Of a stretch of DNA of 64,000 nt, positions 13,571 to 53,914 are shown piece after piece. Both the position numbers and the translations under genes were made by a program. This DNA is from Phaeosaccion multiseriatum. Its lineage: Eukaryota > Protista > Ochrophyta, other classes. The notes under the pieces are model-generated. The model saw only the letters and a list, made by a program, of their open reading frames with translations. It was not told the DNA's origin and did no database searches. Location of the stretch: NCBI GenBank assembly GCA_965112735.1, contig OZ218950.1, positions 1,240,001 through 1,304,000 on the forward strand. The letters are read 5' to 3'. Position 1 is the stretch's first letter; every line of letters begins with the position of its first letter.

Positions 13571-14961
13571 GGTCTGTCGGTCTGTCTGTCTGTCTGTCTG
13601 TCTGTTCTGTCTGTTTGTCTGTCTGTCTGTCTATCCCTCCTTCCATCCATCCAGTGCCATCTTTGCGCTCCTGAGAACAAACACGTGCTTCCCGGGCTGG
13701 TGGCGCAGCTTCACCGCTTAGGTAGGGGACAGGGGGGGGGGGCGATGGCAGTGGAGGATAAGGGATATGAGTGGCTTGCCCCACAGCTTGTCTCTCCCGT
13801 CAATTTGGTGTCATTCCTACCCCCTTCCCTCCTCTCCTCTCCCTTGCTTCATGTGATCCTTGATGCATGTGACTCATCTATGCCCTGCCCTGTATCACCA
13901 ACTTCCCCCCCCCCCCGCCCTTCCCTCCCCAGGCAAGGATAAGCCTGCTCTGCTGTTGGCGAAGCTCTCGTTTGAGGATCTCTTCGAAGCGGCCTCTTAT
14001 CAAGACGAGGTGGCCACACTTGGTGCCGGACGCTTCGGGCAGGTCAGTCAAGTCGACTCGGTATCAGTCATTCAGCCAGCCAGTCAGTCAGTCAGTCAGT
14101 CAGTCAGTCAGTCAGTCAGTCAGTCAGTCAGTCAGTCAGTCAGTCAGTCAGTCAGTCAGTCAGTCAGTCAGTCAGACAGTCAGTCAATGCCTGGCGTCTG
14201 GTAGGTCAGTCAGGTCGACTCGGTATCAGTGAGTCAGTGAGTTAGAGTGTCAGTCAGTCAGTCAGTAACTGGTGTCGGTCAGTCACTCAGTCCTCACTAC
14301 TGGTATCAGTCAGTCAGTCTGTCAGTCAGAGTCAGTCAGTCAGTAACTGATGTCAGTCAGTCAGTCCGTCGGTCAGTCAGCCAGTCCGTCAGCCAGCACT
14401 TGGTGGAAGGAACGAACGAAGGAAGGAAGGAAGGAAGGAAGGAAGGCAGTCAGTCCGTCAGTAATCAACCAGTCAGTCAGTCAGTCAGTCAGTCTCTGTC
14501 TTGTGGGGTAATTCTCATCTCGTCGGGGGCTGGCTCAACCTCTACTCTTTGACCCTGACCCTCCAAATGCCTCCAAATGCCTCCAAATACCTCCATATGC
14601 CTCCATACGCTTCCAACCCCTTCTCAGGTGTTCGCTGTGAGAGCACCTCCTTCCATGAGGAGGCAGGGACTGGGACATTTGGTGGGCAACAGCTGTCCTG
14701 ACACCAACAACACGTTCACAGATGGCGATGATAGTGAGAATGGCAGCAGAGGCACAGTTGCGGTCAAGCGCATCCCCCGGGAGGATGGTCCTCTATGGGC
14801 TCAGTCCCCCGGGGGGGGCGGGGCTTTGTGACGTGTTTGCGGAGGTGAGGGCACTGCAGTTGCTGAAGGATGTGAAGGGGGTGTGTCGCCTTCTCGACTT
14901 TGGCGGTACAAAAACGAACTATACGATGGTACTGGAGCGGTGTGAGGTTAGCCTCAAGCAG
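7720..14961 (+). CDS. Large low-complexity protein with a Tudor/Agenet-like domain and a protein-kinase N-lobe; multi-exon, frameshifts at G runs, kinase C-lobe missing, start uncertain
   Basis: YEVGQEVDA...WFPGTI...FSVK|FDDGD (10158-10690); LGAGRFGQ|VFAV (14020-14042, 14628-), VAVKRI, EVRALQLL, VCRLLDFG, MVLERC (to 14961). Confidence 0.55.
13362..13631. repeat. (TCTG)n intronic microsatellite
   Basis: Direct inspection. Confidence 0.95.
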
Positions 14962-15042
14962 GTCAGTCCGGAAGGGAGGGAGGGAGGGAGGAGAGGGGAG
15001 AAAGGGAGGGAAGGAGAGAGAGAGAAGGGAGAGAGGGGGAAC

Positions 15043-15392
15043 GTCCTCCTCCTCCTCCTCCTCCTCCTCCTCCTCCTCCTCCTCCTCCTCCTCCTCCTCC
15101 TCCTCCTCCTCCTCCTCCTCCTCCTCCTCCTCCTCCTCCTCCTCCTCCTCCTCCTCCTCCTCCTCCTCCTCCTCCTCCTCCTCCTCCTCCTCCTCCTCCT
15201 CCTCCTCCTCCTCCTCCTCCTCCTCCTCCTCCTCCTCCTCCTCCTCCTCCTCCTCCTCCTCCTCCTCCTCCTCCTCCTCCTCCTCCTCCTCCTCCTCCTC
15301 CTCCTCCTCCTCCTCCTCCTCCTCCTCCTCCTCCTCCTCCTCCTCGTCCTCCTCCTCCTCCTCCTCCTCCTCCTCCTCCTCCTCCTCCTCCT
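15043..15392. repeat. (CCT)n microsatellite, ~350 bp, with duplicated flanks
   Basis: Direct inspection; the flanking sequence recurs at ~15468-15625 around a shorter tract. Confidence 0.95.
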
Positions 15393-15667
15393 CCCCCTCC
15401 CCCCCCCCTTCCTCCTCCTCCCCTCCCCCTTCCACCTTTTCCCCTCTCACTCCTAATATATCCCCCCGGAGGGAAGGAGAGAGAGAGAAGGGAGAGAGGG
15501 GGAACGTCCTCCTCCTCCTCCCTCCTCCTCCTCCTCCTCCTCCTCCTCCTCCTCCCCCTCCCCCCCCCCTTCCTCCTCCTCCCCTCCCCCTTCCACCTTT
15601 TCCCCTCTCACTCCTAATATATCCCCCCCACCCCGTCCACTGCCATCTCTCCCCCCCACCCTTATAG

Positions 15668-18198
15668 AACCAAGTCTCGATTCCCAGGCAGCCGTATCTC
15701 CGCAGACTCCCTCGTGGCGTGGGCGCTGCAGGCAAGCACGCCTTCGGTCGGACAGCTCACCACCGATACTCTGCCCAGGTCAGTCAGTCAGTCAGTCAGT
15801 CAGTCAGTCAGTCAGTCAGTCGGTCAGTCAGTCAGTCAGTAGGTCAGTCAATCAGTCAGTCAGTAGGTCAGTAGGTCAGTAGGTCAGTCAGTCAGTAGGT
15901 CAGTAGGTCAGTCAGTCAAGCAGTCAGTCAGTCAAGCAGTCAGTCAGTCAGTAGGTCAGTAGGTCAGTAGGTCAGTCAATCAGTCAGTCAGTCAGTCAGT
16001 CAGTAGGTCAGTAGGTCAGTAGGTCAGTCAATCAGGCAGTCAGTCAGTCAGTCAGTCAGTAGGTCAGTTGGTCAGTCAGTCAAGCAGTCAGTCGGTCAGT
16101 CAGTCGGTCCGTCAGTCAATAAGGATTGGCGCTTTCTGCTTCGATCGGAGGGCGTTCTGTTCCCTTCACTTTTCTTGTCTTATACCTTCCTTCCACTTCC
16201 TTGCCCCCACTGCCTTCCACCCACTGCCTTCCTTCCCCACGCCACCACCACTCACAGATACTACACACTGGCGGCGAAGGAAGTAACCGTTTTCACTGAC
16301 GTGGACCTTGACGCCAACAGCAAGGGCTACGAGTACTTCGCCACAAGGTTACGTAAGGCCACGCAGGGCTTACCTAAGCATGAGGTAGTCACCAACATTG
16401 CGGATGCAGAAGAGCTCAAGGAGAGGATGGCAGAGAGGTACATGATTACTGATATGGAGGGACGAGATACAGCGGTGGGCATGCGCGTCGGGCTCAAGTT
16501 CTTTGCCATGAAGGTGAGCGTGTTGGTGATACAGAGAGAGAGAGAGAGAGAGAGGGAGGGAGGAGTGGAAGCCACACCACGCCATTTGACATCATTTGGT
16601 TGGCACTTTTTTGACACAGACGCTATTCTCTTTTTGGAGTAAGCGCAGAAGCTTCCATATGGACCCCACATAGAATATGGTGTTCGATTACTGATACGGT
16701 CACATAAAACAGAAACTGAAAATTGCTTGACACTTGCTTGACACTTGACATTTGACAGGGCGTGTTTTCAGGAGAAGCATTGGATGCGTTTGTTCGCTCC
16801 GTTCTCGCGGGGGATGTACAGCCCGTACATACAGCAGCGGGGCCGGAGACCTTCTCGGTGAGTGAGACTTGACCAGAGCATTTGGTGATACAAAGCAGAG
16901 CAGTTGGTGATGCAGAGCAAAGTAGACGAGGTAGAAAGTGATTCAAAACACTCCATGATCATATCACAAGACGTGACACATGTCGGTGATACATGCTGGT
17001 GATACTGACACATGTTGGTGAACATGTTGGTGATACAGGAGGAAGCGAAGCGGGTTCGTTCACGCTGAAAGGAATGTGAAGAAAGCCCTTCCTTGGCTGG
17101 TCTGTCTCAGCCATCCATCTTTCTTCCCTCATCTTTATCCATCCATCCGTCTACCCTACCTACCACCGTAACTTATTTATCCATATGCCTGTGTACGGCA
17201 CCGTATCACCAACACACCACAGCCGCCCATGCCATCGTCGCCGTTTGGCGAAGCCCAAGAGGAGGAGGAAGTGGACGACAGCCACGTCGTGCACGTAACA
17301 GACAAAACCGTCAAGGAGGTGAGGTGCTGGAGAGAGAGAAGTCCGGGGAGTCATGGCGATTGCGGTTGGGGAGGGAGGGTGCCCATTCCATAGCGCATCT
17401 TCTTTTGTTCTTTGTGTGCATCTTGCCTTCCGCTGCACTGAACGAACCTATGTTTTCTTGTCCCTCCCCTCTCCCTCCCTCCCTCCCTCCCTCCCTCCCT
17501 CCCTCCGTCCCTCCCTCCCTCCCCTCTCCCTCCCTCCCTCCCTCCCTCCCTCCCTCCCTCCCTCCCTCCCTCCCTCCCTCCCTCCCTCCCTCCCTCCCTC
17601 CCTCCCTCCCTCCCTCCCTCCCTCCCTCCCTCCCTCCCTCCCTCCCTCCCTCCCTCCCTCCCTCCCTCCCTCCCTCCCTCCCTCCCTCCCTCCCTCCCTC
17701 CCTCCCTCCCTCCCTCCCTCCCTCCCTCCTCCCTCCCTCCCTCCCTCCCTCCCTCCCTCCCTCCCTCCCTCCCTCCCTCCCTCCCTCCCTCCCCCCCTCC
17801 GTCCGTCCGTCCCTCCCTCCCTCCCTCCCCTCCCCGCTTTGTGTATTGCCAGGTGACAGAGAGCGGAGACGTGCTTATCGAGTTCTACGCGCCTTGGTGT
17901 GGCCACTGCAAGGTACGCTGCAAGTATGGCTGTTCGGCCTGTTTGTGTCCTTCTCTCTCTGTCTTTCTCTCTCTGTCCTTGTCTCTCTTTCTTCTCTCTC
18001 CTTCTGTCTCTATCTTCCCCTCTCTCTCCTGTCTTTCTCTCTATCCTCCCTCTATCTCTCTGTTCTGTCCGGTCCTGTCCTGCTTTGGCTCCTTGCAAAA
18101 GTCCAGCTCACGCTGACGTACATCATCACGTCCTCTCATCGGCGACCACCTACACACACACACAAACACACACATACATACACACACACAAACACACA

Positions 18199-19899: not shown

Positions 19900-20497
19900 T
19901 GTTAGAAGTCGTGCTTTTGCTAGACTGGTACCTACCCTCTGAATTCAGACCGGGAGGTACCAGTCTAGCAAAAGCACGACTTCTAACAAGCCCTAATGCT
20001 AGAAGTCGAACCCCCCCCCCCCCACCGCACATAGTGGAGAGAAGTAACTCGCAGTCTGGGAATCAGACTAATGGGTGCCAGCCGGTACCAGTTTTCGCCG
20101 AAAAACACACTTTTTTCACAAGCTACAGCCAGGATTCGAACTCGCAATGGCCTTGTTAGAAGTCGTGCTTTTTGCTAGACTGGTACCTCCCGGTCTGAAT
20201 TCAGAGGGTAGGTACCAGTCTAGCAAAAGCACGACTTCTAACAAGGCCATTGCGAGTTCGAATCCTGGCTGTAGCTTGTGAAAAAAGTGTGTTTTTCGGC
20301 GAAAACTGGTACCGGCTGGCACCCATTAGTCTGATTCCCAGACTGCGAGTTACTTCTCTCCACTATGTGCGGTGGGGGGGGGGGGGTTCGACTTCTAGCA
20401 TTAGGGCTTGTTAGAAGTCGTGCTTTTGCTAGACTGGTACCTCCCGGTCTGAATTCAGAGGGTAGGTACCAGTCTAGCAAAAGCACGACTTCTAACA
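19900..20497. mobile_element. 598-bp near-perfect palindromic element A-B-A-B'-A with three ~88-bp hairpin units; TG..CA ends; 4-bp TSD CGTA
   Basis: TGTTAGAAGTCGTGC...GCACGACTTCTAACA units at ~19900, ~20154 and ~20410; spacer B followed by its reverse complement; CGTA at 19896-19899 and 20498-20501. Confidence 0.88.
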
Positions 20498-20510
20498 CGT
20501 ACTAGAGGGA

Positions 20511-23153
20511 TCAAACTACATCAAGTCTATCGGCATTCTTGGTCTCCTCAGGCTGTTGCGCACTCTGCAACGGGAAAGACGCTACTCCTCGGCGAGGGCT
20601 GCTTCTCTCTCGAACCGCATGTCTCCTCCACCCCGCTCTGCCCTTGTTGCGAAGGGTTCCCTCTTCTGCCGGGGCTCCGGCGCTATCCAGCTCCGTTTCG
20701 CGACGGCGCGGCGCAGCGAGCGCTCGGGAGGACAAGACGTGCTTTCTCAGCGGTATGCCCACCCACGCCACGTCTCCACCCTCTGAATTGGTGACACTTT
20801 CACCTCTCATGGCCATGCTCAGGTCACCAACGTTAGCTCCTGCTTCAACGCGGCATCCAGGCTGCAAGTGAGCCCTTGCTCCGAGCCACGCGTTCTCCCC
20901 GACTTGGACAGCCTTGAAGACGAGCCCTCCCGTGCCTTCGATGGTGTGCGCGAAGATTGTGGAGTCTTGCAACACCACCGCTTCGTCTCCAATGACGAGA
21001 AGATGCGCATCTTCAGGCCTGAGCCATAAAGATGTGTCCTTGCCAACACTTGCCCCCAGCAGCCGCAGCCACGCCGCGTACACCGGCCCGCCCGCGAAGT
21101 ACTTGATGCAGAGAGCCTCTATGAAGGCAGGGCCTATGCTGCCGAAGCGACGTAAATCGAACGAAGGCGAATCGAACGCTATGGGAGGCTGCCCCTCTTT
21201 GGCCTGCAAGGATGTGCCCAGAACTCGATGGAAATGAATGGCTGAGAGAGCGCCCGCCAAGGCCATGAGAACTTGAAAGACGAAGCTCCCCAACACAAGG
21301 AAGAACACTCCAGTATGGCTCTCGCTCAGAGTATCCTTCGCCACCACTTCCGGAAGGACGAAGGGACAGAAGGCGGCAGCCCCATGCACATGGCCATTGC
21401 GAAGCAGCAGGTCAGATGCCGACGCGCTGATCAGCACCCCCGGACACCATACGCCGAGGAGCAGCACCACAGTCGCAAGCCCACGCAGCGCATTGTGCAC
21501 CCTCGACGGAACAGGAAGATTGCCTGCTGCATCGACGCCATCCTTCTCAGCATCAGCACTCGCTGGGTTCGGCAATACAAACGGCCGAGGGGCGCCCACT
21601 ACAGAAGAGTTGCGCGGCACGTCGTCGTCTCTACCCACAACGGTGCGATCGGCGACCGTGCTTCCGTCCCCAATGCAAGCTCCGCCCAGGAGAAGAGCTT
21701 CGTTCGCAACAACGCTGAAGCGCCCGATGGTGATGCTTTGCGTATCCTCCTCTCCACGAGTTCCCCCATCAGCGAAAAGGTGCACACGGTTCGCGAGCTG
21801 GGAGTTTTCCCCTATCCTGAGCTTCTCCCATATCGTAGTGATAGGAAGTGTATGAAGTGTGCACCCCCGCTCCAGTCTGGCGCCCATGGCGGAAGCAAAA
21901 ACACGGCTGAGCCCACAGTGTGCCACAAGAAGGAAGCCAACCTTGAAGAGAGGACTCTCCTGAAGAACTCCGAGTGACAGCCGTGTGGTGGCGCTGGGGC
22001 CCAGTAGCAAGAAAATACGCTGTAGCGATAGCACTGCCACCATGTACAGCAGGCTTCCGATCATCAGCAGCACGGGGAACGCCAATGCACGAGCGAAGAT
22101 GGGGACACTCTCCCCCGCGCCATCGTCATCACCCCCACCGGCAAGCACGAGTATCCAGAGGGGCAGCAGGTACGACCCCAAGTTGGTCACTGAAAGCAGG
22201 GCCAAAGCACAAAGCTCTTTTCCTATCCGCCGCAGCCCCTGGTCGCGTTCGACCTCTGCCAGCGGGCCAGAGAGTGACGAATGACCGAGCGACGCGTACG
22301 GACCGAGCTCCATCCCCTCGCCGATGATCACGTCCTTTGGCTCCTCATTCAGGCCCTCCCCCCCCTCCTGCGTCTGCCCCCCCTCCCATGGAGACGGACA
22401 CACGTTGGACAGTATGCCCACCTTTGCTCCCTTCCCGATCCTCACGCGATGGACATGGAGCATGCCATTCCGAGTAATGACAGACGGGCGAATGACGGCT
22501 CCGTACTCGATCACGGCCCCTTCTCCAATCTCGATCAAGTCATGCTCGTGCAGCAGCCAGCTCTCTAAGCGCGCGCTTCCACTGATTCGTGCCCCCAGCA
22601 GGCGGTTCCACACCCGCAAGGCGAAGGTACCACGGAGGGTAGAAATCAGCAGTGCGGCAAGTTTCAGCACATTCTGCACAGCATACCACCGCCAGTAGTA
22701 CCAGCTCCTCACGGACCATCGCCCCGGTCGCATGCGGCCCAGCACAGTCCACTTCACCACTGCAATCAGGGCAAGGAACCAGCTTGCTGACACGACGACG
22801 AGGAGTGGTAGCCAAGAAAGAATCCTCGTATTGCCGCGCCCTGCTCTGCGTAGCAAGTACACGCCAACGAAGCTGGGAGAAAACCCGCAGCTGAGCACAG
22901 CAACAACGAGCAGCCAACTCAGAATCTGCAGCACCACTTGCTTGTCAGTGCTGAGCCTCCGGTGCGCTTTCATCGCTTCCCCTCCTCCATCGACTGACTC
23001 GAAATCGCGCTCCTCGTCCGCCACTCGGGGGGCCTCGCTTGCTGCCGACGACTCCTCCCCGCTGTCTCCTCTGCCTCCGCCCTCCTCCGCGGCACCAAGC
23101 ACTGAAAGTGCCACAGCGGTTCGGTTCTGGAAGATCTGCATTACTGTCAGAGC
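20511..23153 (-). CDS. Last exon: end of PCP plus Pls/PosA-type NRPS terminal domain (3 TM pairs alternating with 3 hexapeptide-repeat left-handed beta-helix domains)
   Basis: Six hydrophobic segments; [19 protein letters not shown]; repeated R(L)LGA(R/S)(I/V)G followed by [LIV]G-repeats ([49 protein letters not shown]). This matches the TIGR02353-type terminal domain pattern from memory. Confidence 0.8.
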   Translation of the reverse strand, partial: ALTVMQIFQNRTAVALSVLGAAEEGGGRGDSGEESSAASEAPRVADEERDFESVDGGGEAMKAHRRLSTDKQVVLQILSWLLVVAVLSCGFSPSFVGVYLLRRAGRGNTRILSWLPLLVVVSASWFLALIAVVKWTVLGRMRPGRWSVRSWYYWRWYAVQNVLKLAALLISTLRGTFALRVWNRLLGARISGSARLESWLLHEHDLIEIGEGAVIEYGAVIRPSVITRNGMLHVHRVRIGKGAKVGILSNVCPSPWEGGQTQEGGEGLNEEPKDVIIGEGMELGPYASLGHSSLSGPLAEVERDQGLRRIGKELCALALLSVTNLGSYLLPLWILVLAGGGDDDGAGESVPIFARALAFPVLLMIGSLLYMVAVLSLQRIFLLLGPSATTRLSLGVLQESPLFKVGFLLVAHCGLSRVFASAMGARLERGCTLHTLPITTIWEKLRIGENSQLANRVHLFADGGTRGEEDTQSITIGRFSVVANEALLLGGACIGDGSTVADRTVVGRDDDVPRNSSVVGAPRPFVLPNPASADAEKDGVDAAGNLPVPSRVHNALRGLATVVLLLGVWCPGVLISASASDLLLRNGHVHGAAAFCPFVLPEVVAKDTLSESHTGVFFLVLGSFVFQVLMALAGALSAIHFHRVLGTSLQAKEGQPPIAFDSPSFDLRRFGSIGPAFIEALCIKYFAGGPVYAAWLRLLGASVGKDTSLWLRPEDAHLLVIGDEAVVLQDSTIFAHTIEGTGGLVFKAVQVGENAWLGARAHLQPGCRVEAGANVGDLSMAMRGESVTNSEGGDVAWVGIPLRKHVLSSRALAAPRRRETELDSAGAPAEEGTLRNKGRAGWRRHAVRERSSPRRGVASFPLQSAQQPEETKNADRLDVV

Positions 23154-26100
23154 CTGCAGGAGTCACACAGACACAACAGGGTCAGTAACAAGAGCGGGAC
23201 TCAACACGACGAAAGCTTTGGGCTCAAAGTCACTCACCTCGAAGCCGGGCACCTCTGCCCGGATACGCGAAACCGCCTGAGCCGCACTCAACGATGTGCC
23301 TCCCTCTGCGAACAAGTCGTCATTGGCCTGCAAGCGAGGCTGCTCTGTGGCCTGCCTCAGGATGCCCAGCACTTGGCGGGCAGTGTCGCCTAACGCCTCG
23401 TCGCCGTCGGACGACTGTACAGCGGTTTTAATGTTTGCTTCCGCCTTAATCATTCTCAGCACCTCTTTCACGTCTCGCTTCCCGCTGCTCGTCATCGGCA
23501 GAGCATCCACGGCCACAGCCGTGCTCGGCACCATGTATGCCGGTAGCAGCTTGCCCACTCCTTGCAGCACCACCTCAACGTCGGCACTAGGAGGTGTCAG
23601 AGCCGCCACAACCGTCTCACGCTCTCTGTCCACGGCTGCCACAGCGCTCCTCACACCCTCTTGATGGAGCAGCGCAGCCTCCACCTCGCCCAGCTCAATG
23701 CGATAGCCGCGCACCTTCACTTGAGAGTCTCGGCGACCCCTAAACACCAGCGATCCGTCTGCCAGCTGCCGCACCAAGTCACCCTGTCCGAAGGTGTTAA
23801 GTTTGAGACGCGTCAGATCAGAACAGTGCCACAGGGCAGCAGAGAAAACCACCTCGACCCCCCCCCCCCCGTTGCATTCTCTGCTGTTCACTGCATGACA
23901 TGCCAAAAGCAAGCCAAATGTACACACAACACACGCACACACACAAAGCCGCACACCCATGGGCAACCTTTTCCACTTACCGTACGATACACTCTGCGCT
24001 GGTCCGCCAAGAAGGGCGCGGGGATGAAGGCCTTCGACGTGAGCTCTGGGCGCTTCAAGTACCCACGGGCCAGCTGTCTCCCCCCAATGCACAGCTCGCC
24101 CTCCACGCCCTGAGGCACCAGCTGCAGACGCTTATCCACCACATACACTTGCACGCCGGCTCGAGGCTTGCCGATGACGAACCCATTCGACATGGCACCC
24201 GGACTGTACTCATGCGTCGTCACGGCATTCGTTTCGGTTGGGCCGTAGCTATTCACAAGGCGCACATGGTGCCTCCACATGTCCACTTGGCCTTCCTTGA
24301 TCGGCTCCCCAATCAATGCGATGGACCGTAGGGTGGCCTCCTTAGCTCCAGTGGTGATGTCTTGCGGTCGGAGCAGCGACAGCAGTGACGGGGTGCAGTA
24401 CATGTCCGATACCCTCAAAGACCGTATCAGCTCCGGCAGGTCGTTCAGCATGGAGCCCTTCTCTGCCAAGCAAAGCGTCGCCCCACACGACAACGGCCCG
24501 AACAGCGACGCCACAGACACATCAAATGTCAAAGCCGCACTCAGGAGCACACGAGAAGATGCCGTTATCGTCAGCTCCTCTTCGAAGAGAGTCGCCATGA
24601 AGCTGGCCGTGCTTCCATGCTCAATCATCACGCCCTTTGGCCGGCCGGTACTACCGGACGTGTGAATCACGTACGCCATGTTCTCGCCCACCGCGTGGCA
24701 CACAGGCTCCGCGGTACTCTCCATTTGCATCACAGCCACCACGTCCACACAGCTCACGTCTCCGACACGCCGCGCTAAGCTGGCATCGGCGGTTGCCAGC
24801 ACCTCAGACTCGCCTGCTGCCTTTGCCGTCGTCAGAACGACGCTCAGCCCGGCGTCTTGTGCGATCATCGACAGCCTATCGTCGGGATGCTCGGGATCCA
24901 GGGGCACGTACGCCGCCCCGGCCTTGAGCACGCCCAGCACTGCCACAACCGCCTCCACGCAGTCCCCAGCAATCAGCACCCCCACCAGGCACTCCGGCCC
25001 CACGCCCCTCCCCTGCAGCATGCATGCCACCGCATTCGCATGCCCATTCAGCTCCCCGTAGCTCATCACCCGACCCGTCTCATACTCGTGCAGGGCCTCC
25101 TGCTCCGGACTGCGAGAGGCCATCTCTTCGAAAGCCGCGTGCAGGAGGGGCGGTGGTGGCGATGCTTCCTCTGCACCTCCCTCCGTGTCTCCATTGGCAT
25201 CCCCCGCCACCAGTGCAGCGCCGCTCAACGTATCCACCACCTTCACACGGTCCTCGTGTGCCAAGAGACTCAGCTTCCACACGCTCTCGCCCGGCCTGCC
25301 CACTGCACTCTCCAGCAGCGCCAGGAAGCTCCGCCCCAGGGTCTCCACTGTGGCCTGGTCGAGCACCGCCGTATTGTAGCACAGGCTGCCGAGCATATCC
25401 GACGCACTGTCCGTGCTGCGCACAAGGCATAGCTCGATGTCAGCCGTATTCTTCCAAGTATCCACACCCGCCTCCTGCAGTACAAAGAAAGCCTGCAGCG
25501 CATTACCACGACCATCTCTGCCCAGCTGGGCCCGCTCCACCACCTTGTGGAACGGTGCCTCGGCATGCTTCATGGCACCCAGATACGCGACCTGTACGCG
25601 AAGAAGCACCTCCCGAAAGCTGGGGCTTCCTCCCAGGCCCAGACGGAACGCGAGGGTGTTGACGAAGCATCCCATCACGCCCTCCAAGCCTTGCGCCACG
25701 TCTCTTCCGAAGTGCGCAGTGCCCACCACCACGTCCTCCGCTCCGCACACACGAGCCAGCAGCACTTGGAACGCGCCCATGAGCCCCACAAACAGCGTGG
25801 CGGAGCTATCCGCGCACAGTTTACTCAACTTGACCAGCATTCCATTGGGTAGGACCAAGTCCACCCTCCCGCTTCCTCCCACACGGATATCTTCACGCAC
25901 CATTTCTCCACTGAGGCTCATTTGGGCATGTCGCTGACGGAGAGGCAGCTGCAGTGGACTGGTACCAGCCAGTTGACCCTGCCAGTATTCAAGCAGCTCC
26001 TCAATACGGCCTTCGCCGTCCAGCCGAGCTCGTTGCCACCTGGAGTAGTCCGCGAAGCTGAAGGGCAGAGCCGGTAGGTCTTGTGCGATTCCTCTCCCGG

Positions 26101-29100
26101 CCATGGCAGCCGCGCATGTGGCCTTGAACTCGCCCTGGAAGAGCAAGTAGGATGCACCATCAAAGATGCAATGATGGAAAGTAGATACTGCGGCATACTG
26201 CTCCTCTAGTCCGCTCTGCTGCGGGAGGTGTACGACCAACGTACGCCATAGAGGCTGGCTCCGCTCCAAATCGAATGGACGAGCGATATCGGCCTCGATC
26301 AGGCTCCGAGCGGCCCCAACACTGGTGGCCACGGCAGAGGAGAGACCAGCTGACACCACCGCGGCTGCCGTAGTTCCAAGCTGTAGCTGCCTCAGAGAGC
26401 CCTGCTTTGTCCACTCAAGCGACGTCCGGAGCACATCATGTCGCTCCACTATGCTGCCTAACACTTGTGCTATCATGTCCACAATTTCAGCGGATGTTCG
26501 TCCGGAGATCAGCGAGACTGGCAGCGGCAGCACAAGTGGGAGATTGTACGCGCTCTGCCCGCCAGGGGAAGTCGTCCGCAGTGCTATGTCTGAAAAGTAC
26601 ATGTGTTCCTGCTGGTAAGCCGCGGGGGCGTCAGCATCCAAGGAGAAGTAGTACGAAAGACCTGTTGCTTGATCATCAGGCTCACTCAGATGCCCCGAGT
26701 CCGCTCCCAGCACTTCCTCTTGGATCCATGCAGCCATTGCAGACACCGATGGATACGTAAACAAGGCGCCGCTCGACATGGTGACACCACACCAGGCCTC
26801 GACTCGCTTGCCAAACTCCACGGAACCCATCGAATCGAGCCCGGCTTCCATCAAGGGCATCGTTGCTGTAATGGTCACGTCATCGCCAACACACTCGACT
26901 GCCATACCCGTCAGGACATGCTCGATCCTCTCCCGCCGTGCTGACTCCGACAAGTGCAGGAGCTCCTCCCGCACCTCGGCATTAACCTTTGCCGCCTCAC
27001 CACTTTCTCCGCGGTCCGTCAACTGCCCGAGAAAATCGCTGTGCACAGGGGCCAAGCTCGCTCGGAATCTGGACCACCTCATGGCCGGCATGACGGCCAC
27101 CTCCTGCACGTTGGCTTGCGATTGACTTGCAAGGACGGCATCCAGAGTCTTCATACCTAGCGCCGATGAGATCAGGCCCACTCCGGCCATCTCCGCAGCT
27201 TTGGACACCATTTCAAGCCGCACCGCCATACCCACGTCGCCCCATGGGCCCCACTGAATGTTGGAAGCAGGAAGGCCAAGCTGGCGTCGGCGGTACCGCA
27301 TCAGCCCGTCCAAAGCAGCATTGGCCCCGGCATAGGCGCTCTGATTGGACAAGCCAAGCAAAGCGGAGGTCGATGAGTACGAGGCGAAGAAGTCGATCTC
27401 CTCCCTGCCGCTCGCCGCCCACTCAAGGCACAGCGCGTGGAGATTCCAACCTCCCTGTATCTTGGCGGCAAAGACGTTTCGCACGTTCTCTTCCTTCTCG
27501 CCCGACAACATTCCCTTTGTGCCATTCACCTCCGCTGCGTGGATCACACCCCGAATATGAGGCAGGCCCACCAAAGCATTCGCTACAGCATCTCGAAGCT
27601 GGCACATGTCAGACACATCGCAGGCCACGGCCACAGCGGTGACACTCTCCATGCTCTGCAGGGCCTGCCACAGCTCTGAAACTTCCTCCGCCACCCGGCC
27701 GCTTTGAGAAAGGAGGAGCAGGTGTCGAGCACCCTGGGAGACCAAGTGATTCGCCGTCGCCAGCCCCAGCCCCCCCAGACCACCGCTGATCAGGTAGGTC
27801 CCATCCTCCCTGCACGTGAAGCGATCGACTCCTGCCGGCGTCAGATGGAGTGTGCTGGGCACCAGCCTCGGAGCGAGGATCCCACACCCTCGAACCAGCA
27901 GGTCCACGCCTCGGCCGCCGTCGCGGGCTCCTGCAGCCAGCGTCACAGCCTGGGAGATAGCTTGGGCTTCCATCTTCTCTACTCTAGGTCGTGCATCCTC
28001 AAACTGTGGATACATGGCATACTCAAGGTCGATGTGGTTCACATCGAGGTCGCCCCGCTCCAGGCGTACGCTTCTCACCAGTCCCACTGCCCAGCTGTCC
28101 TGCCAACCAGCACCGCTGTACACTCCCGTTGTCACCACCGTGATCGGCATCACTGCCGCGTCCCCGTCTAAGCTCTGTACAGTTTGCACAAAGTGGATTG
28201 CCCCATCGGTAGCAGAGCCCGTTGCTGACGTCAAGTAGAAGAGATGGGCCCCACGTGGCTGCGCGTCCGAGCCGAGCGCCTCCACCATGTGCACCTCTAC
28301 ACCAATTGCTGCCGCCGTGCTTTGGATAGCTTCCAAGGCTCTGTGGTTGTTCGATGCGTGCTGCTCTTCAGCTGCCTGGGGAATCACGACGAGCCACGGA
28401 AGGTGGCCGGTCAGCGAAGCCGGCTGCGAAGCCGTGGGCACCTCCACCGCCTCCCACTCAACAACATAGAGCGGGCCCTGCTCAGCTTCACTCCGCGGCT
28501 GACGTGCTGCTGTGGCTCGCGCTGTGTACCAAGGAAAGGCTTTGCGCGTTGGGAACAGGATATGCTCCTTGCCCTTACTCTCTGGCTGCTGCACTGTGCT
28601 TAGAGCTGCTCGAAACGAATCCTCAGAGTTCTGCCCTCGTGTGAGGGAGGAGATCCACGCCAACCCCTCGCGACGCTCGCACTTGGCTCCCATGCTGCTC
28701 AGCACAGGGTTGGGGCCCACCTCAACGATGCTCAGGTCAGCCCCCCTCCCGTCTCCCATCCAGTGCTCCACCACCGTGTGGATGCCTTCTGCGAACAGCA
28801 CTGGCGACAGCATGTGCTGCACCCAATACGTCGCCTGCGTCACCTCCTCCCCTCTCACCACCTCACCCGTCACGTTGGACACCAGGGGAATGCGTGGGGC
28901 GCTGAATGACACCTGCCTCAGAACCTCCTCCAGCGCACGTACAGCGGGCTCCATCAGAGGAGAGTGGAAGGCGTGCGATACCTCCAGGGCCTTGCAGCCC
29001 ACCCCATCTGCCGTCAGCCTCTCCACCACCTTGTCCACACCGCTGCGCGCTCCAGAGATCACGCTCGCGCTCGGTCCATTCGACGACGCCAGCACCACCT

Positions 29101-32100
29101 CGCCTGCCCCCCCCGCAGCGTCGATGCTTGCCAAAGTCGCCTCTTTGCCTGCCGTCACTGCGAACATCACTCCCTTGCCCTCGGGGCAGGCCTGCATGGC
29201 GGCTCCTCTCTTGGCGGACAGCATCAGTCCATCCTCCAGCGACATGACGCCGGCCACGCACGCCGCCACCACCTCGCCCAGGCTGTGGCCCATCACCATG
29301 GACGGCTCCACGCCCTCCGACTTCCAAAGCTCACACAGGGCGTACTCCAGCACAAACAGGCACGGCTGGCAGTAGCGTGTCTCCTTCAGCAGAGCTTGTG
29401 CAGTCTCCTTCTCCTTCCCCTCCTCCTCCTCCTCCTCCTCCTCCTCCCCGTCCTCAGCGACCGCCGGGTACATGAGCTCCACCACAGACTTGTCCAGCCA
29501 AGCCCGCTCCATGAGCAACCTGCTGCACCGCTGTATGCACTCGCGGAACACGCCCTCTTCCTCGTACAGCTCTCTGCCCATGCCCACGTATTGCGAACCC
29601 TGTCCAGTGAACACAAACGCCACCGGTGCACGCTTCTTGCTTTGCTGTCCATCCAGCTGCAGCAAGGCTTCGCCCCTCTCAACCAACGTTGGTCCGAAGC
29701 TGCTGAGCACTGCGTGGGCATTCGTGCCTCCAAATCCGAAGGAGCTCACCCCCACCACCACAGATCCATCGGAGTTGGTGGGTAAAGGGGTCATGGAAGA
29801 TGGGAACAGGACTGCAAGTCCCTCCATGTCGAGCTCTGGATTTTGCTCGATGAAGTGAAGATTGGGTGGAGCGGTCTTGTGCTGCGCCATCAGCACTGCT
29901 TTGATGAATCCGGCAATCCCTGCTGCACCCTCCAAGTGCCCAATGTTTGTCTTGAGCGCCCCCACGATCAAAGGCTTCGCTTCATCGCGGTCGTGGGCGA
30001 ACACTCCTCTCAGAGCGCTCATCTCGATGGGGTCGCCGAGAGACGTGCCCGTGCCGTGCGCCTCCACGAAACTGACGTCGTTCGGACACAGCCCAGCGTC
30101 GATCAAGGCGTCTGCGATGAGCTGCTTTTGAGCGCCAGGGTTTGGAGCCGTCATCCGCGCGGTGGGCCCATTATGGTTCACAGCCGAGCCTCGCAAGACA
30201 GCCAGCACCTCGTCGTCGTTGGCAAGGGCGTCGTCTAGGCGCTTCACCACGATTGCTCCGCACCCCTCGCCTCTGACGTAGCCGTTGGCGGACTTGTCAA
30301 ATGTTTTACAGTGCCTTGAGAGTGAGGACGGAAGAGGGAAACAGGGGAGATTTAGCTAAGAAGGCGGGAGGAGAAGGGGCGATCTAAGGTTCTCACTCTA
30401 CCTCCCTGAACGAAACAGTGGTGCGTAACCAGGTGCCTGCCGACTATAATACTAGCTTCCACCTGCCGGGGTATCATACTCATTCACTCTCTCCCTCCCT
30501 TCCTCCCTCCCTCCCTCCCTCCCTCCCTCCCTCCCTCCCTCCCTCCCTCCCTCCCTCCCTCCCTCTCTCACCCCCTCCCTCCCTCCTTCCCTCCCTTCCC
30601 TCCTTCCTTCCTCCCTACTCTCCCCCCAACGCACACTCACGCACTCACCCATCTGGCGAGAGAAACCCTCCTGAGGAAAGGACCTTGAAGGGCGCCTCGC
30701 TGAGTAGCAGGTTCACTCCTCCGACGACAGCTGTGTCACACTTGCCCAATCGCAGGCTGCTGCAGGCGTTGTCCAGGGCGACCAAGGAAGAGGAGCACGC
30801 CGTGTCTACCGTTGAGCTCGGCCCCTTCAACCCCAGCGCGTAGGAAACTCGGTTGGCCAAATTCGACATGGAGGCTCCTGACGCCACGTACACGCTCTCG
30901 CTTGCCTCGCCAGCTCCTTGGCTTGCTTTGACCTGCAGCCAATCGCTTCCAGCGCAGCCAACAAAGACCCCTGTCTCGCTCTTGCGGAGACTGCGCTTGT
31001 CATAGCCTGCCCTGTGCAGCGCCTCGAAGGCCACCTCCAGCAGCACGCGCTGATTGGGGTCCATGCTTTCCACTTCCGCTGACGAAATGCCGAAGAAGGC
31101 GTTGTCGAAGAGGTGGACGCCCTCTATGAAGCCTCCTCGCCACTCCTTAGAGCCGCTTCCCCACCGGTCTGCTGGAGCTGTAGAGATGCAGTCCGATCCC
31201 GTGCAAAGCATGCTCCAGAAACCTTGGGGCGAAGTCACTCCTCCTGGAAAGCGGCACGCCATGCCCACCACCGCCAGCGGAGCTCGCACGCCTTGAGGCG
31301 AAGCCGAGGTGGGGCGCAAACCTCGCATTGGGTCTGTGACAGCCCTTCCCATTACCTCGCCATCAAGCCAGCCCACAAGCTCCGCCAAGCTGGGGTACTC
31401 AAAGAGCACATCGACGGTGGCTGTAACCCCAAAGTCCGTGTGAAGGCGATTCCGCACCTCCACGAGGGCCATCGAATCCAGGCCTGCCTCCATCAAGGGC
31501 ACATTGTCGTCCAGCGGGGGCATGTCTGCATCAACACACTTCAGCACGGTCGCCTTGAGCGCTTCCAGGAGAGCAGCGCGCCGATCCTCTGGGGAGAGAG
31601 CAGAGAGAGTCTCGCGCAGCTGTGAGAGGGCGTCTCCAGCTGGGGGAGGAGCAGATACAGGACCCTCGAAATCATGCGCTGGTGTTGCCCTCTTCGGGAG
31701 GGGAAACTCTCGCGACGAGGGGAACCCCTGCCATGGGGTGCCCACTCTCTCTGCTGCGCCTTTGGGCCTCATGCCGCCGTAGCTGCCCAAGATGACGTGG
31801 GCGTTGAAACCGCCAGCAGCGTAGGAATTCACTCCTGCGAGCAGCGTCGAGCCGTCGGAGCAGTAGGAAGAGAGGGGCGTCCTTCGGGTGGGCAGCGTGA
31901 CGGGCACGCCCTCCAGCTTCAGGTTGGGGTTGACCTCCTTGAGGTGAAGGTTGGCTGGGGCCTCTCGGTGCTGTACTACCAAGATGGCCTTGATGAGCTG
32001 AGCCATCCCTGACGCCCCTTCCATGTGGCCTAGAGTAGTCTTTACAGTGCCCACTACAAGGGGGGAGGCATCAGGCCTGTTGGGGGTGAACGCTGCCTTG

Positions 32101-35100
32101 AGTGCGCCTAATGAGTACCACGCGACGTGCGTGCGTGCGTGCGTGCGTGCGTGAGAGGGGGAGAGAGGGAGGGAGGGAGAGAGGAAGGGAGAGGGGGGGT
32201 AGGAGGGTGGGAGGGAGGGAGGGTAGGGGGGAGTGAGGGAGTGAGGGAGGGAGGGAGGGAGGGGGGAGGGATGGAGGGATGGAGGGAGGGAGGGAGGGGG
32301 GGGGGGAGGGAGGGAGGGAAGGAGGGAGGGAGGGAGGGAGGGAGGGAGGGAGGGAGGGAGGGAGGGAGGGAGGGAGGGAGGGAGGGAGGGAGGGAGGGAG
32401 GGAGGGAGGGAGGGAGGGAGGGAGGGAGGGAGGGAGGAGGGAGGGAGGGAGGGAGGGAGGGAGGGGGAGGGAGGGAGGAAAGGATGGAAGGAGGAGGGAT
32501 GAAGGGAGGAAAGGAGGGAGGGAGGGACGAGTGGAGGGCACGAATACGCTTTATTATGTCTCATCACATCATCATTTTTCTAGCTGAGACGTAAGAGAGA
32601 CATCACAATGATGGTCCAACACGAATCCCCACCTTTAACCCCCTTTGCTTCCTTCAACGTACCCAGCTCGATGGCGTCGCCCATGACCGTTCCCGTGGCG
32701 TGAGCCTCAACGTAGCCCACTTCTCTCCCCTCGCACGCTGCCTGCCGCAGGGCGCTCCTCGCCAAGCTCTCTTGGGCGGCTCCCTTCGCGGCAGACAGAG
32801 AACTGCTGACGCCGCTGTGGCTGACAGCCGCTGCCTTGATGACGGCAAGGATATTGTCTCCGTCCTTGATGGCGTCCGGCAGGTACTTCAGCACGACGGC
32901 CCCGCTGCCCTCACTGCGCACGTAGCCGTCCCCGGCGGCGTCAAAGGATTTGCAGTACCTGGAGCAGGAGACGGGACACAGAAAGTAGAGTGGGGGGGGG
33001 GTGGATCAGTGTCCAAGCAAGGGACCAGAGAGAAGAGAAAGGGTGCTTTGGAAGGAAGAATATAGATGCAGCAACAGCTGCAGGAGCAAACTCACCCTTC
33101 CTTCGACAGAAGTCCTGCACTGGCCAGGGCGCCAAAGCCTTGGTCGTGGAGCAGCAGGTTGACCCCGCCAACGACGGCAGAGCTGCACTGCCTCAGTTTC
33201 AGACTGTTGCACGCGTTGCTAAGGGCCACTAGGGCCGACGAACATGCTGCGTCTATGCTTTCGCATGGACCTACAAGGCCGAGTGTGTGCGAAATGCGGC
33301 CAGCGAAACATGCTCTGCTTGCCCCTACCGACGTGTAGGCGCTGAGAGAAACACCATCAGCGCTCTCACGCAGCAAAGCGGGCCAGTCACTCCCTGCAGC
33401 GCCCACAAACACGCCAACTCGGTGACCTTCAAGCCTGCGTCGGCCCTCGTAGCCGGCTCTGTGCAGAGCCTCGTACGCCACTTCGAGCATGATGCGCTGG
33501 TTGGGATCTTGGGCCTCCGCCTCGGCGGTGGACATGCCGAAGAATGCGTTGTCGAACACTTCAACACTGTCGATGAAGCCACCTGCTCGCATGACGGGGA
33601 GAGGAGGAGCGTTCAAAATGGGGTGAGTGGGGCACAGAGACGGGCAAAGAAGCGCCCAGCAGCAAAGCTGTTCATGCCCTTCAAGACTAACATTTGCAAG
33701 CCTCGTGGACACAGGGTAAAAACGCACCTCTCACTCCTGTTCCCAAGCCTCGCTCAAGGGGTGCATCGGTGACGCAGTCCTCTTTATTGCACAGCTTCGC
33801 CCAGAGCTCTTCCGGGCTGTTGCAGCCACCGGGGAACCGACAGGCCATCCCAATGACTGCAATATGGCCGCTGCTGCCGTCATAAGAAGGTACCCCAGGA
33901 ATGGAGCGAGGCAGTCCGTCAATGCCAGGAAGCGTGTCCTCCCTGCTCGCACACAAGCGAGACACACCCCTCGCGGTGGGCGTGTGGAACATCTCTGCCA
34001 CCTGGAGCGCCTAAGTACAGCAACGAGTAAAGAGATCCGACGGTCAACGACTACATTAGCAAACCATTTGGAACCACCGGCCACACCAGAAAGACAGCCC
34101 TCCGTCCCACTCACCTCGAAGCCTGGCACCTCTACGCGGATGCGCGCTGTGACACTTACAGCGTCAAGCGAAGTGCCTCCCTCGGCGAACAAGTCGTCGC
34201 TGGCTCGCAGACCCGGCCGCCCAATGGCCTCTCGCATAATGCCGAGCACTTGACGGGTGGTGCCGTCCATAGGTGCGTCATCGCTGACGCTTAGGCTCCG
34301 TTGCTGGCCAGGGCCATGGTGACGTGCAGCTCGAATGGCTCTGAGAACCTCTTTCACGTCTCGCTTCCCGCTGCTCGTCATCGGTAGAGCATCCATAGCC
34401 ACAGCCGTGCTCGGCACCATGTATGCCGGTAGCAGCTTGCTCACTCCTTGCAGAACCATCTCAACGTCGGCACTAGGAGGTGTCAGAGCCGCCACAACCG
34501 TCTCGCGCTCGCTGTCCACGGCTGCCACAGCACTCCTCACACCCTCTTGATGGAGCAGCGCAGCCTCCACCTCGCCCAGCTCAATGCGATAGCCGCGCAC
34601 CTTCACTTGAGAGTCTCGGCGACCCCTAAACACCAGCGATCCGTCTGCCAGCTGCCGCACCAAGTCACCCTGTCCGAAGGTGTTAAGTTTGAGACGCGTC
34701 AGATCAGAACAGTGCCACAGGGCAGCAGAGAAAACCACCTCGACCCCCCCCCCCCCGTTGCATTCTCTGCTGTTCACTGCATGACATGCCAAAAGCAAGC
34801 CAAATGTACACACAACACACGCACACACACAAAGCCGCACACCCATGGGCAACCTTTTCCACTTACCGTACGATACACTCTGCGCTGGTCCCCCAAGAAG
34901 GGTGCGGGGATGAAGGCCTTTGACGTGAGCTCTGGGCGCTTCAAGTACCCACGGGCCAGCTGTCTACCCCCAATGCACAGCTCGCCCTCCACGCCCTGAG
35001 GCACCAGCTGCAGACGCTTGTCCACCACATACACTTGCACGCCGGCTCGAGGCTTACCGATGACGAACCCACTCGACGTGGCACCCGGACTGTACGCATG

Positions 35101-53100: not shown

Positions 53101-53213
53101 CGCGCGGGGGAGTGGCCGTGAATGCGGTGGAGCAGCATCAGGAAGTGGCCGTGAATTCGGTGGAGCAGCATCTGGACCATCAGCCGTCACAGGAGGTGGG
53201 GGTGAATGCAGTG

Positions 53214-53244
<31 letters not shown>

Positions 53245-53830
53245 CGGCGCAGCAGCCGCGGCTCACGCCCACCCAGCAGCGGCCCTTGCTGTTCCACGGC
53301 TCGGTCAAGCAGCGTGGCAACGGCAATGCCCCATTTAACTGCATGACTTGTCGCCGCGCCGGCCATGGATGGATAGAATGCAACGCCATTCCCGCTACGC
53401 GTGAGGAGCTGCTCGGCCTTGTGAGTCGCGTGCAGCGGCGGCAGGCGGTCAGAGCGCTGCACCAGGAGTCCGACATGTCTGAAGCCGTAGCAGCAATGGT
53501 GGCGGGCACTCTGGCGGCGCAGGACGGGTTCAAGTTCGAAGGCTGACGGTGCCCCGGGGCTGCTTGGCCAGCAGCCCTGGGGACCACGACCGCAGCGCGT
53601 GAGGATAGCGTCGGCGTGGGGGGACAGGGGGGGAGGGCAGGCAAGAGCAGTGTAGAAGATAATGAATGTACTTCGCACCTATCTTGTTTGTCAGACCCAC
53701 CTTTGCCCCATGCCGACGCTCAGCGTAGGAGCGGTCAGGCTAGTCGTGTAGAGCAGGAATCACCTGCCATCAGAGTTTATCGGAGTGACATGTGGTGTGG
53801 CGACAGACTTGCTGAGCTGCGACGCAAGCA

Positions 53831-53914
<84 letters not shown>

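Follow-up and report, generated by a model that had tools for sequence, protein, structure and literature searches.

The stretch of DNA analysed here, called the window below, comprises 64,000 nucleotides from the ochrophyte alga Phaeosaccion multiseriatum (GenBank assembly GCA_965112735.1, contig OZ218950.1, positions 1,240,001 to 1,304,000 of the forward strand); all coordinates count from its first letter. It carries a very large gene for a modular polyketide synthase-nonribosomal peptide synthetase (PKS-NRPS), which runs along the minus strand from ~64.0 kb to 20.5 kb as serial open frames of ~60% GC. An initial annotation had proposed that this assembly line ends in a membrane polymerase domain of the Pls/PosA type instead of a thioesterase (TE), and that this domain polymerises the polyketide-peptide unit or ligates it to a membrane or cell-surface acceptor. 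The analysis below deals with the last exon of the gene, with the fold and relatives of the domain encoded there, and with the reaction that it may catalyse.

The end of the gene has the following parts, in the order in which they are read:

23784 to 23980, minus strand: intron of 197 nt (GTAAGT...GGACAG) that splits the A8 motif (YRT/GDL)
23238 to 23783, minus strand: exon with the A8-A10 motifs of the adenylation (A) domain and the first half of the last peptidyl carrier protein (PCP) domain (Pfam AMP-binding_C, PP-binding)
23154 to 23237, minus strand: intron of 84 nt (GTGAGT...CTGCAG; donor GAG/GTGAGT, acceptor CTGCAG/G) with an in-frame stop if it is retained
20511 to 23153, minus strand: terminal exon of 880 codons plus stop (20511-20513), from which come the rest of the PCP, a linker and then the terminal domain of Pls/PosA type
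23070 to 23153, minus strand: C-terminal half of the last PCP within the terminal exon (PCP profile across the junction; colinear with the Chrysoparadoxa PCP)

The splice to the last carrier domain

The open reading frame (ORF) 20511-23141 remains open as far back as 23153, and the intron at 23154-23237 interrupts the PCP itself. The Pfam PP-binding match in the upstream exon, in which the serine that takes up the phosphopantetheine (Ppant) arm lies at 23292-23294 within the motif GGTSL, covers the profile only up to position 47 of 67, and the terminal exon supplies the missing part of the domain with its first 28 codons. We made a PCP profile from 119 family members (region A-end/PCP/linker); it gave 160.1 bits for the spliced product, 150.7 bits for the exon alone and 152.7 bits for the read-through form, and its alignment runs ~30 positions beyond the junction in the spliced form only. 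In an internal twin module, too, the PCP is interrupted by an intron at this codon (VPGFE/GTGAGT, near 34113). From this shared donor context the internal PCP (~34113) leads into a ketosynthase (KS) exon and the last PCP (23237) into the Pls-type exon. Finally, the spliced window product aligns by BLASTP with the Chrysoparadoxa australica protein CAM9397790.1 (29% identity over 751 aa, E 2e-60), and this alignment is colinear from A8 via the PCP, the linker and the first transmembrane (TM) helix into the second soluble repeat.

We accept the fusion on four grounds: the PCP is cut by the intron, splicing lengthens the profile match, the twin PCP shares the intron position, and the single ORF of Chrysoparadoxa is colinear with the spliced product. 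The in-frame GT-AG splice on which the initial annotation was built is thus upheld at the DNA level, and 20511-23153 is confirmed, as far as the genomic sequence goes, as the exon in which a single, very large PKS-NRPS gene with introns truly ends. The statement that no TE or reductase follows also held: past the stop codon, neither was found in the minus-strand ORFs of at least 70 aa down to 15.8 kb, nor in the 323-aa ORF 14764-15735. Bacterial contamination or an island acquired by horizontal gene transfer was considered and rejected, the GC content being the same as in the flanks and a spliceosomal-type intron joining the exon to the rest of the gene.

A different reading of the junction would make 20511-23141 a separate gene that starts at the ATG at 23141 and encodes a stand-alone membrane protein with left-handed beta-helix (LbH) repeats, the megasynthase ending within 23154-23237. 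This ATG stands in frame four codons into the exon, database proteins of 690-850 aa that consist of the terminal domain only do occur (many may be fragments), and the splice itself is predicted from DNA. However, the PCP would lose its last helices and the megasynthase would be left without any release domain. The GT-AG intron also coincides exactly in position with that of the twin PCP, and the Chrysoparadoxa protein passes through the junction in a single ORF. We consider a separate gene very improbable.

Four sequencing runs, all from one sample, match the stretch. Their Logan contigs behave as genomic DNA, and one contig crosses the acceptor unspliced. In each of the four runs, the contigs at 19900-20500, just beyond the stop codon, are 10-100x as deep as over the gene and show many internal joints; a high-copy repeat abuts the 3' end of the gene at this place.

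Fold and membrane topology of the terminal domain

The terminal exon was compared with the NCBIfam and Pfam models. It matches TIGR02353, the model of the Pls/PosA terminal domain (NRPS_term_dom), in three stretches with E 7e-42, which agrees with the family named in the initial annotation. However, its score of 143.6 bits falls below 423.1 bits, the curated cut-off of this model, which is of the equivalog_domain type. The other NCBIfam matches are LbH acyltransferases and are restricted to repeats 2 and 3. The sole Pfam match is Hexapep (PF00132), with 49.3 bits against a cut-off of 27, at aa 749-776.

A Kyte-Doolittle scan over 19 residues detects six strong hydrophobic segments in three pairs (aa 73-91/115-133, 314-338/357-375 and 559-577/615-633). 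Together with an AlphaFold2 (AF2) model of the exon, this gives the following layout:

22881 to 22949, minus strand: TM1, aa 69-91 (hydropathy and AF2)
22740 to 22832, minus strand: TM2, aa 108-138 (hydropathy and AF2)
22284 to 22598, minus strand: soluble repeat 1 (C1), left-handed beta-helix, the best conserved of the three repeats
22140 to 22238, minus strand: TM3, aa 306-338 (hydropathy and AF2)
22002 to 22100, minus strand: TM4, aa 352-384 (hydropathy and AF2)
21570 to 21881, minus strand: soluble repeat 2 (C2), beta-helix, the most degenerate repeat (W392L, R421S, G428E)
21399 to 21503, minus strand: TM5, aa 551-585 (hydropathy and AF2)
21207 to 21314, minus strand: TM6, aa 614-649 (hydropathy and AF2)
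20736 to 21056, minus strand: soluble repeat 3 (C3), beta-helix with the near-invariant His of the family, H736 (codon 20946-20948)

The AF2 model, for which an alignment of 74 sequences served as input, has a pLDDT of 77 and a pTM of 0.84, and in it six helices of 22-36 residues alternate with three beta-helical blocks. Repeats 1 and 3 are recognisably related to each other (31% identity over 90 aa, E 1e-5), whereas BLAST did not detect repeat 2, which emerges with profiles only. Hydropathy, the AF2 model, the Hexapep and LbH matches and the likeness of repeats 1 and 3 agree on three TM pairs alternating with three beta-helix repeats, six TM helices in all, as the initial annotation had expected.

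Its proposal that a predicted structure would resemble Pls was likewise borne out in a comparison of prediction with prediction. Against clusters of the ESM atlas that are named Pls/PosA or combine PP-binding with Hexapep, the AF2 model reaches template modelling (TM) scores of 0.70-0.74, with a root mean square deviation of 3.7-4.6 A over 704-752 residues. Sequence and Foldseek searches of the Protein Data Bank returned no solved structure of Pls; the matches there are soluble LbH acyltransferases only.

In the predicted model each TM pair forms a hairpin, so that the PCP would share one membrane face with the three LbH domains; for an assembly line, this face is expected to be the cytosolic one. 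An acceptor at the cell surface fits poorly because the hairpins place the three soluble domains on the side of the PCP, and this part of the initial annotation is in conflict with the topology.

Modules upstream of the terminal exon

At least seven modules had been counted in front of the terminal domain, and this number stands: five KS modules and two modules of condensation (C) domain, A domain and PCP lie upstream of the terminal exon, on the same strand and within the window. Their order from the N- to the C-terminal side is KS-AT-KR-ACP, KS-DH-ER-KR-ACP, KS-AT-KR-ACP-C-A-PCP, KS-ACP and KS-AT-KR-ACP-C-A-PCP (AT, acyltransferase; KR, ketoreductase; ACP, acyl carrier protein; DH, dehydratase; ER, enoylreductase). 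The Pfam matches of these domains have E values of 1e-40 to 1e-75 and follow each other in successive minus-strand frames. Colinear modules on one strand mark the gene as a modular type I PKS-NRPS, in which introns split A8, the PCP and a KS. Upstream of the exons given above, the gene is composed as follows:

23981 to 30250, minus strand: open frame that covers KS(C-part)-AT-KR-ACP-C-A from the final PKS and NRPS modules (Pfam)
30645 to 50891, minus strand: AT-KR-ACP / KS-DH-ER-KR-ACP / KS-AT-KR-ACP-C-A-PCP / KS-ACP / KS(N-part), with several short introns (Pfam, sequence)
50892 to 63614, minus strand: intron within the first visible KS (donor TG/GTAAGT at 63614, acceptor GGTCAG/G at 50892)
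63615 to 64000 (match 63612-63995), minus strand: first visible KS, N-half (DTACSSS), beyond which the gene extends out of the window

The first visible KS is split after ...FLSLD, where a paralogous KS is also interrupted, by a small intron. Within the intron of the first KS lies a long terminal repeat (LTR) retrotransposon of 12.6 kb (51036-63604, opposite strand), whose LTRs at 51036-51231 and 63409-63604 measure 196 nt and are 100% identical. Only 10 nt separate it from the GTAAGT donor at 63614, upstream of it, and an intron lacking the element would have ~150 nt.

Two blocks of the type KS-AT-KR-ACP-C-A, at 34774-41190 and 23888-30250, show 99-100% identity over ~1,600 aa, and the differences between them cluster at the pocket of the A domain (LAGE vs LIGE, plus a one-residue indel). 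Judged from these sequences, the twin blocks seem to have arisen very recently, by duplication of a module or by gene conversion, and the specificity residues may have been spared or re-diversified. PKS modules 2 and 4 (41339-46804, KS-DH-ER-KR-ACP, and 30645-33930, KS-ACP) have no AT; perhaps they receive their units in trans, or they do not elongate the chain. A long microsatellite of the (CCCT)n type occupies 32400-32560 of the minus strand in an intron of the fourth KS.

Relatives of the domain and the proposed release step

Among 1.84 billion representative sequences, a HMMER search yielded 1,201 relatives of the terminal domain, the best of them 26-35% identical. Most are canonical proteins of ~1,300 aa with the order A domain, carrier (T) and terminal domain (A-T-term). 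There were no close orthologues above ~35% identity in this set, and a word-index search returned distant bacterial A-T-term proteins only. The following architectures differ from the canonical one or carry unusual A domains:

Stygiella incarcerata, transcript EP01028_P005930 (4,380 aa): KS-AT-...-KS-DH-ER-KR-ACP-term
Chrysoparadoxa: PKS-C-A-PCP-term
Metagenomic: FAAL-ACP-KS-AT-KR-term
Metagenome-assembled genome (MAG) of Pseudomonadota: A-T-C-A-T-term
Phalansterium and Diplonema: C-A-T-term
Gymnodinium (P0063) and Cymbomonas (P0103): A-T-term, A domains without Asp235
Eucalyptus: amine-oxidase-A-T-term-catalase-like

The search for such architectures in protists, which the initial annotation had suggested, was thus productive, with Chrysoparadoxa giving the same C-A-PCP-terminal domain order. 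Its claim of novelty stood in one part: the literature searched held no characterised fusion of a PKS or NRPS with a Pls-type end, the closest report being a 2017 study of the Karenia brevis transcriptome that described LbH regions at, or close to, the C-terminus in three multidomain PKS contigs and made no link to Pls (PMC5725682). As sequences, however, such fusions exist in Chrysoparadoxa, Stygiella, Phalansterium, Diplonema, Karenia and bacterial or metagenomic forms, so that the PKS-NRPS-Pls_term fusion is uncharacterised yet not unprecedented. The fusions of Stygiella, Phalansterium and Diplonema were obtained as transcripts and are therefore expressed in these other protists. The network of the 2023 PosA survey was limited to proteins of 1,100-1,800 aa (PMC10522769), and multimodule fusions would therefore have stayed hidden from it.

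Several further features were seen among these proteins. Eucalyptus grandis and E. globulus have proteins of ~2,300 aa (cluster P0139, e.g. XP_039159797.1) that combine an amine oxidase, an A domain, a carrier, a Pls-type domain and a catalase-like region; going by their sequences, they are an unstudied land-plant use of the Pls-type membrane domain. The metagenomic proteins P0073, P0088 and P0068, some of which are bacterial MAG fragments, have the order cNMP-binding domain, A, T, Pls-type domain and FMN-dependent alpha-hydroxy-acid oxidase, and form a tight clade adjoining the group that contains the window's domain. The A domains that precede the Pls-type domain in P0063 (Gymnodinium), P0103 (Cymbomonas) and P0116 (Diplonema) lack Asp235 and have codes of the form G/A-I/V-W...; their substrates are probably acids that carry no alpha-amino group.

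A maximum likelihood tree of 74 terminal domains separates a canonical clade of 57 rows, which includes the Streptomyces proteins (support in the SH-like approximate likelihood ratio test, SH-aLRT, 99), from the window's domain outside it. The latter groups with Chrysoparadoxa and a metagenomic form of the type FAD-oxidase-T-T (P0047, P0040; SH-aLRT 98), and this group belongs to a loose set that contains all multimodule and protist forms. The curated model TIGR02353 sets the two groups apart independently of the tree, with 631 bits for a Streptomyces member, 170-329 bits for non-canonical forms and 144 bits for the window's domain. H736, R155, R697 and structural Gly residues are conserved across both groups and in the Phaeosaccion domain, and this shared set may constitute the catalytic and structural core. 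E432, D455, R560, E668, D740 and R741 are present in at least 90% of the canonical clade vs 0-12% of the non-canonical set, and are absent from the Phaeosaccion domain; these charged residues could form the acceptor site for a zwitterionic diamino acid.

The A domains differ in a corresponding position. The Glu at position 3 of the A-domain code (Glu221 of PosA) binds the side-chain amine and is essential, and the pattern D-x-E is common to cationic homopolymer synthetases (PMC10522769). In one and the same alignment, the terminal A domain of the window reads DVAYAISAV and the internal one DVAYAASVA; a Streptomyces Pls-like control (P0022) reads DAESIGTV. The codes of the other multimodule forms likewise lack this Glu.

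On balance, and with moderate confidence, we propose that the terminal domain is a membrane-bound off-loading transferase and not a homopolymerase. The analysis shows the homology, the topology, the fusion and the lack of a TE or reductase; the catalysis, the acceptor and a single-turnover release are inferred. The pantetheine arm of the last PCP would deliver the polyketide-peptide thioester to three beta-helices that pack as a pseudo-trimer, as in LbH acyltransferases. A site centred on His (H736, in repeat 3) would activate the nucleophile, and one acyl transfer, located at the cytosolic membrane leaflet or in it, would free the chain by passing it to an acceptor that is no diamino acid. 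Possibly the helix bundle also carries the product into the membrane or through it. In this scheme, the packing as a pseudo-trimer and the surroundings of H736 are taken from the model in the PosA paper (PMC10522769) and not from the coordinates of our own model. A single chain-release transfer appears likelier than polymerisation because the domain and the last A domain lack the residues typical of diamino-acid polymerases and the domain groups in the tree with the non-canonical, mostly protist branch.

The polymerase function put forward in the initial annotation is thus weakened. If the domain worked as Pls and PosA do, PCP-bound units would be added iteratively to a free growing chain, with a polymer or oligomer of the polyketide-peptide unit as the product. 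The fold and the six-TM plan are common to both, and the characterised members of the superfamily are iterative polymerases only (PMC8506220, PMC10522769). However, the Glu that would select a second amino group is missing from the last A domain, and a basic residue is indicated by neither of the A codes. No free amine can be foreseen either, as the alpha-amines would be consumed by the C domains; the clade-specific charged residues are gone, and the score lies far under the equivalog cut-off. We regard such a polymerase as improbable. An iterative ligase, which would join polyketide-peptide units or add them to a membrane or wall component and so make an undescribed class of lipid-peptide biopolymer in these algae, on an assembly line anchored in the membrane, seems just as doubtful.

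Several observations weigh against the proposed transferase. Its chemistry is read from the fold and from Pls/PosA, and the non-canonical branch has no characterised member. The splice is predicted from DNA and the expression of the gene is presumed, and the four DNA-like runs contain no 23154/23237 joint, which is neutral either way. An approximately unbiased (AU) test of the window's domain inside the canonical clade gave p 0.052, a borderline value that does not firmly reject this placement, for a group that was named after the tree had been seen, and long branches are involved.

The remaining points bear on the state of this particular copy and lead to another explanation, namely that the terminal domain is weakened or dead: the domain would be a mere membrane anchor, or the whole gene a young paralogue drifting to loss, with release by hydrolysis or by a trans-acting enzyme. 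The changes D717H, K642H, W392L, R421S and G428E affect positions that are kept by nearly all members of both clades (81-98%), the nearest relatives included. Between the window and the sample, 22 of the 31 listed differences in the exon are non-synonymous; the resulting pN/pS (non-synonymous to synonymous polymorphism) of ~0.85 is compatible with neutrality, and an omega of 0.3 was rejected (p 0.005). These values derive from the best-supported 40 of 85 differences, in one sample and from short contigs. The recent 12.6-kb retrotransposon sits in an upstream intron only 10 nt from the splice donor, and reads show length variants of 1-2 nt at the C8, C7 and G6 runs within the exon.

However, homopolymer indels of this kind are probably typical sequencing errors, and the variant list is partial. 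More than 30 kb of coding sequence is open and every splice site is canonical, the Ppant serine, the observed Cys and His motifs of the KS domains, H736 and most structural Gly and Arg residues are intact, and AF2 folds the domain confidently. Because of the residue changes, the pN/pS and the retrotransposon near the donor, we treat a weakened or drifting copy as unlikely though far from negligible. A working off-loading transferase remains the reading that we prefer.

Chain release determines the final product of an assembly line. The known release domains of PKS and NRPS systems are thioesterases, reductases and terminal condensation-type domains; to our knowledge, a membrane-embedded tri-domain of LbH repeats has never been studied as the release step of multimodular lines. 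Pls-type ends recur in stramenopiles, dinoflagellates, jakobids, amoebozoans, euglenozoans, green algae and some bacteria. If their products are indeed coupled to an acceptor on the membrane side, this would be a new off-loading logic and would point to an unexplored class of protist lipopeptides or lipid conjugates. The Phaeosaccion locus is not the first case. It adds one further, intact-looking example with splice-based proof of the fusion, and it is possibly a less conserved copy.

Comparison with known systems

The closest biochemical models are Pls of Streptomyces albulus, PosA of Acinetobacter baumannii and the fungal epsilon-poly-L-lysine synthetase of Epichloe. As in the Phaeosaccion protein, a carrier is followed in them by a terminal domain of ~730-850 aa with six TM helices and three LbH domains, which is the last part of the protein. 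Six TM helices are described for Pls, and the model of PosA has six bent helices and three five-turn LbH domains in approximate threefold symmetry (PMC8506220, PMC10522769). The near-invariant His in repeat 3 of the Pls/PosA family is kept in the Phaeosaccion domain, which is ~20% identical to these enzymes. In contrast, Pls and PosA each consist of one A-T-term unit (1,100-1,800 aa) with D-x-E for a diamino acid in the A domain, whereas the gene in the window has at least seven PKS/NRPS modules and an A code without Glu.

LbH acyltransferases, such as the galactoside, maltose and serine acetyltransferases and LpxA/LpxD, have the beta-helix fold in common with the Phaeosaccion domain and, by the proposed scheme, also the logic of a trimer with a His as general base. 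LpxA and LpxD use acyl-pantetheine donors carried by ACP. These enzymes are soluble homotrimers with three equal sites, whereas the Phaeosaccion domain has three unequal repeats in one chain with six TM tethers. H736 aligns 4 residues off His115 of galactoside acetyltransferase, which we take to be the catalytic residue, and opposite His119 across a gap, so that the equivalence is approximate only.

Among the fusions, Chrysoparadoxa australica CAM9397790.1 (contig CAXMZZ020000274.1) has the same end as the Phaeosaccion protein, ...DH-ER-KR-ACP-C-A-PCP-Pls_term, and is its nearest neighbour in the tree (SH-aLRT 98). It is encoded by a single intron-free ORF of 3,195 codons that is cut by the contig end, whereas the Phaeosaccion gene is split by introns. 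Chrysoparadoxa keeps D717, K642, W392, R421 and G428, all of which are changed in Phaeosaccion, and its A code is DAMMEGAV, compared with DVAYAISAV. The Stygiella transcript and, by the description in the paper, the Karenia contigs are modular type I PKS proteins in which an LbH/Pls-type end replaces the TE, as in Phaeosaccion. The Stygiella form is a pure PKS whose ACP feeds the terminal domain directly, whereas in Phaeosaccion a C-A-PCP module stands in front of it.

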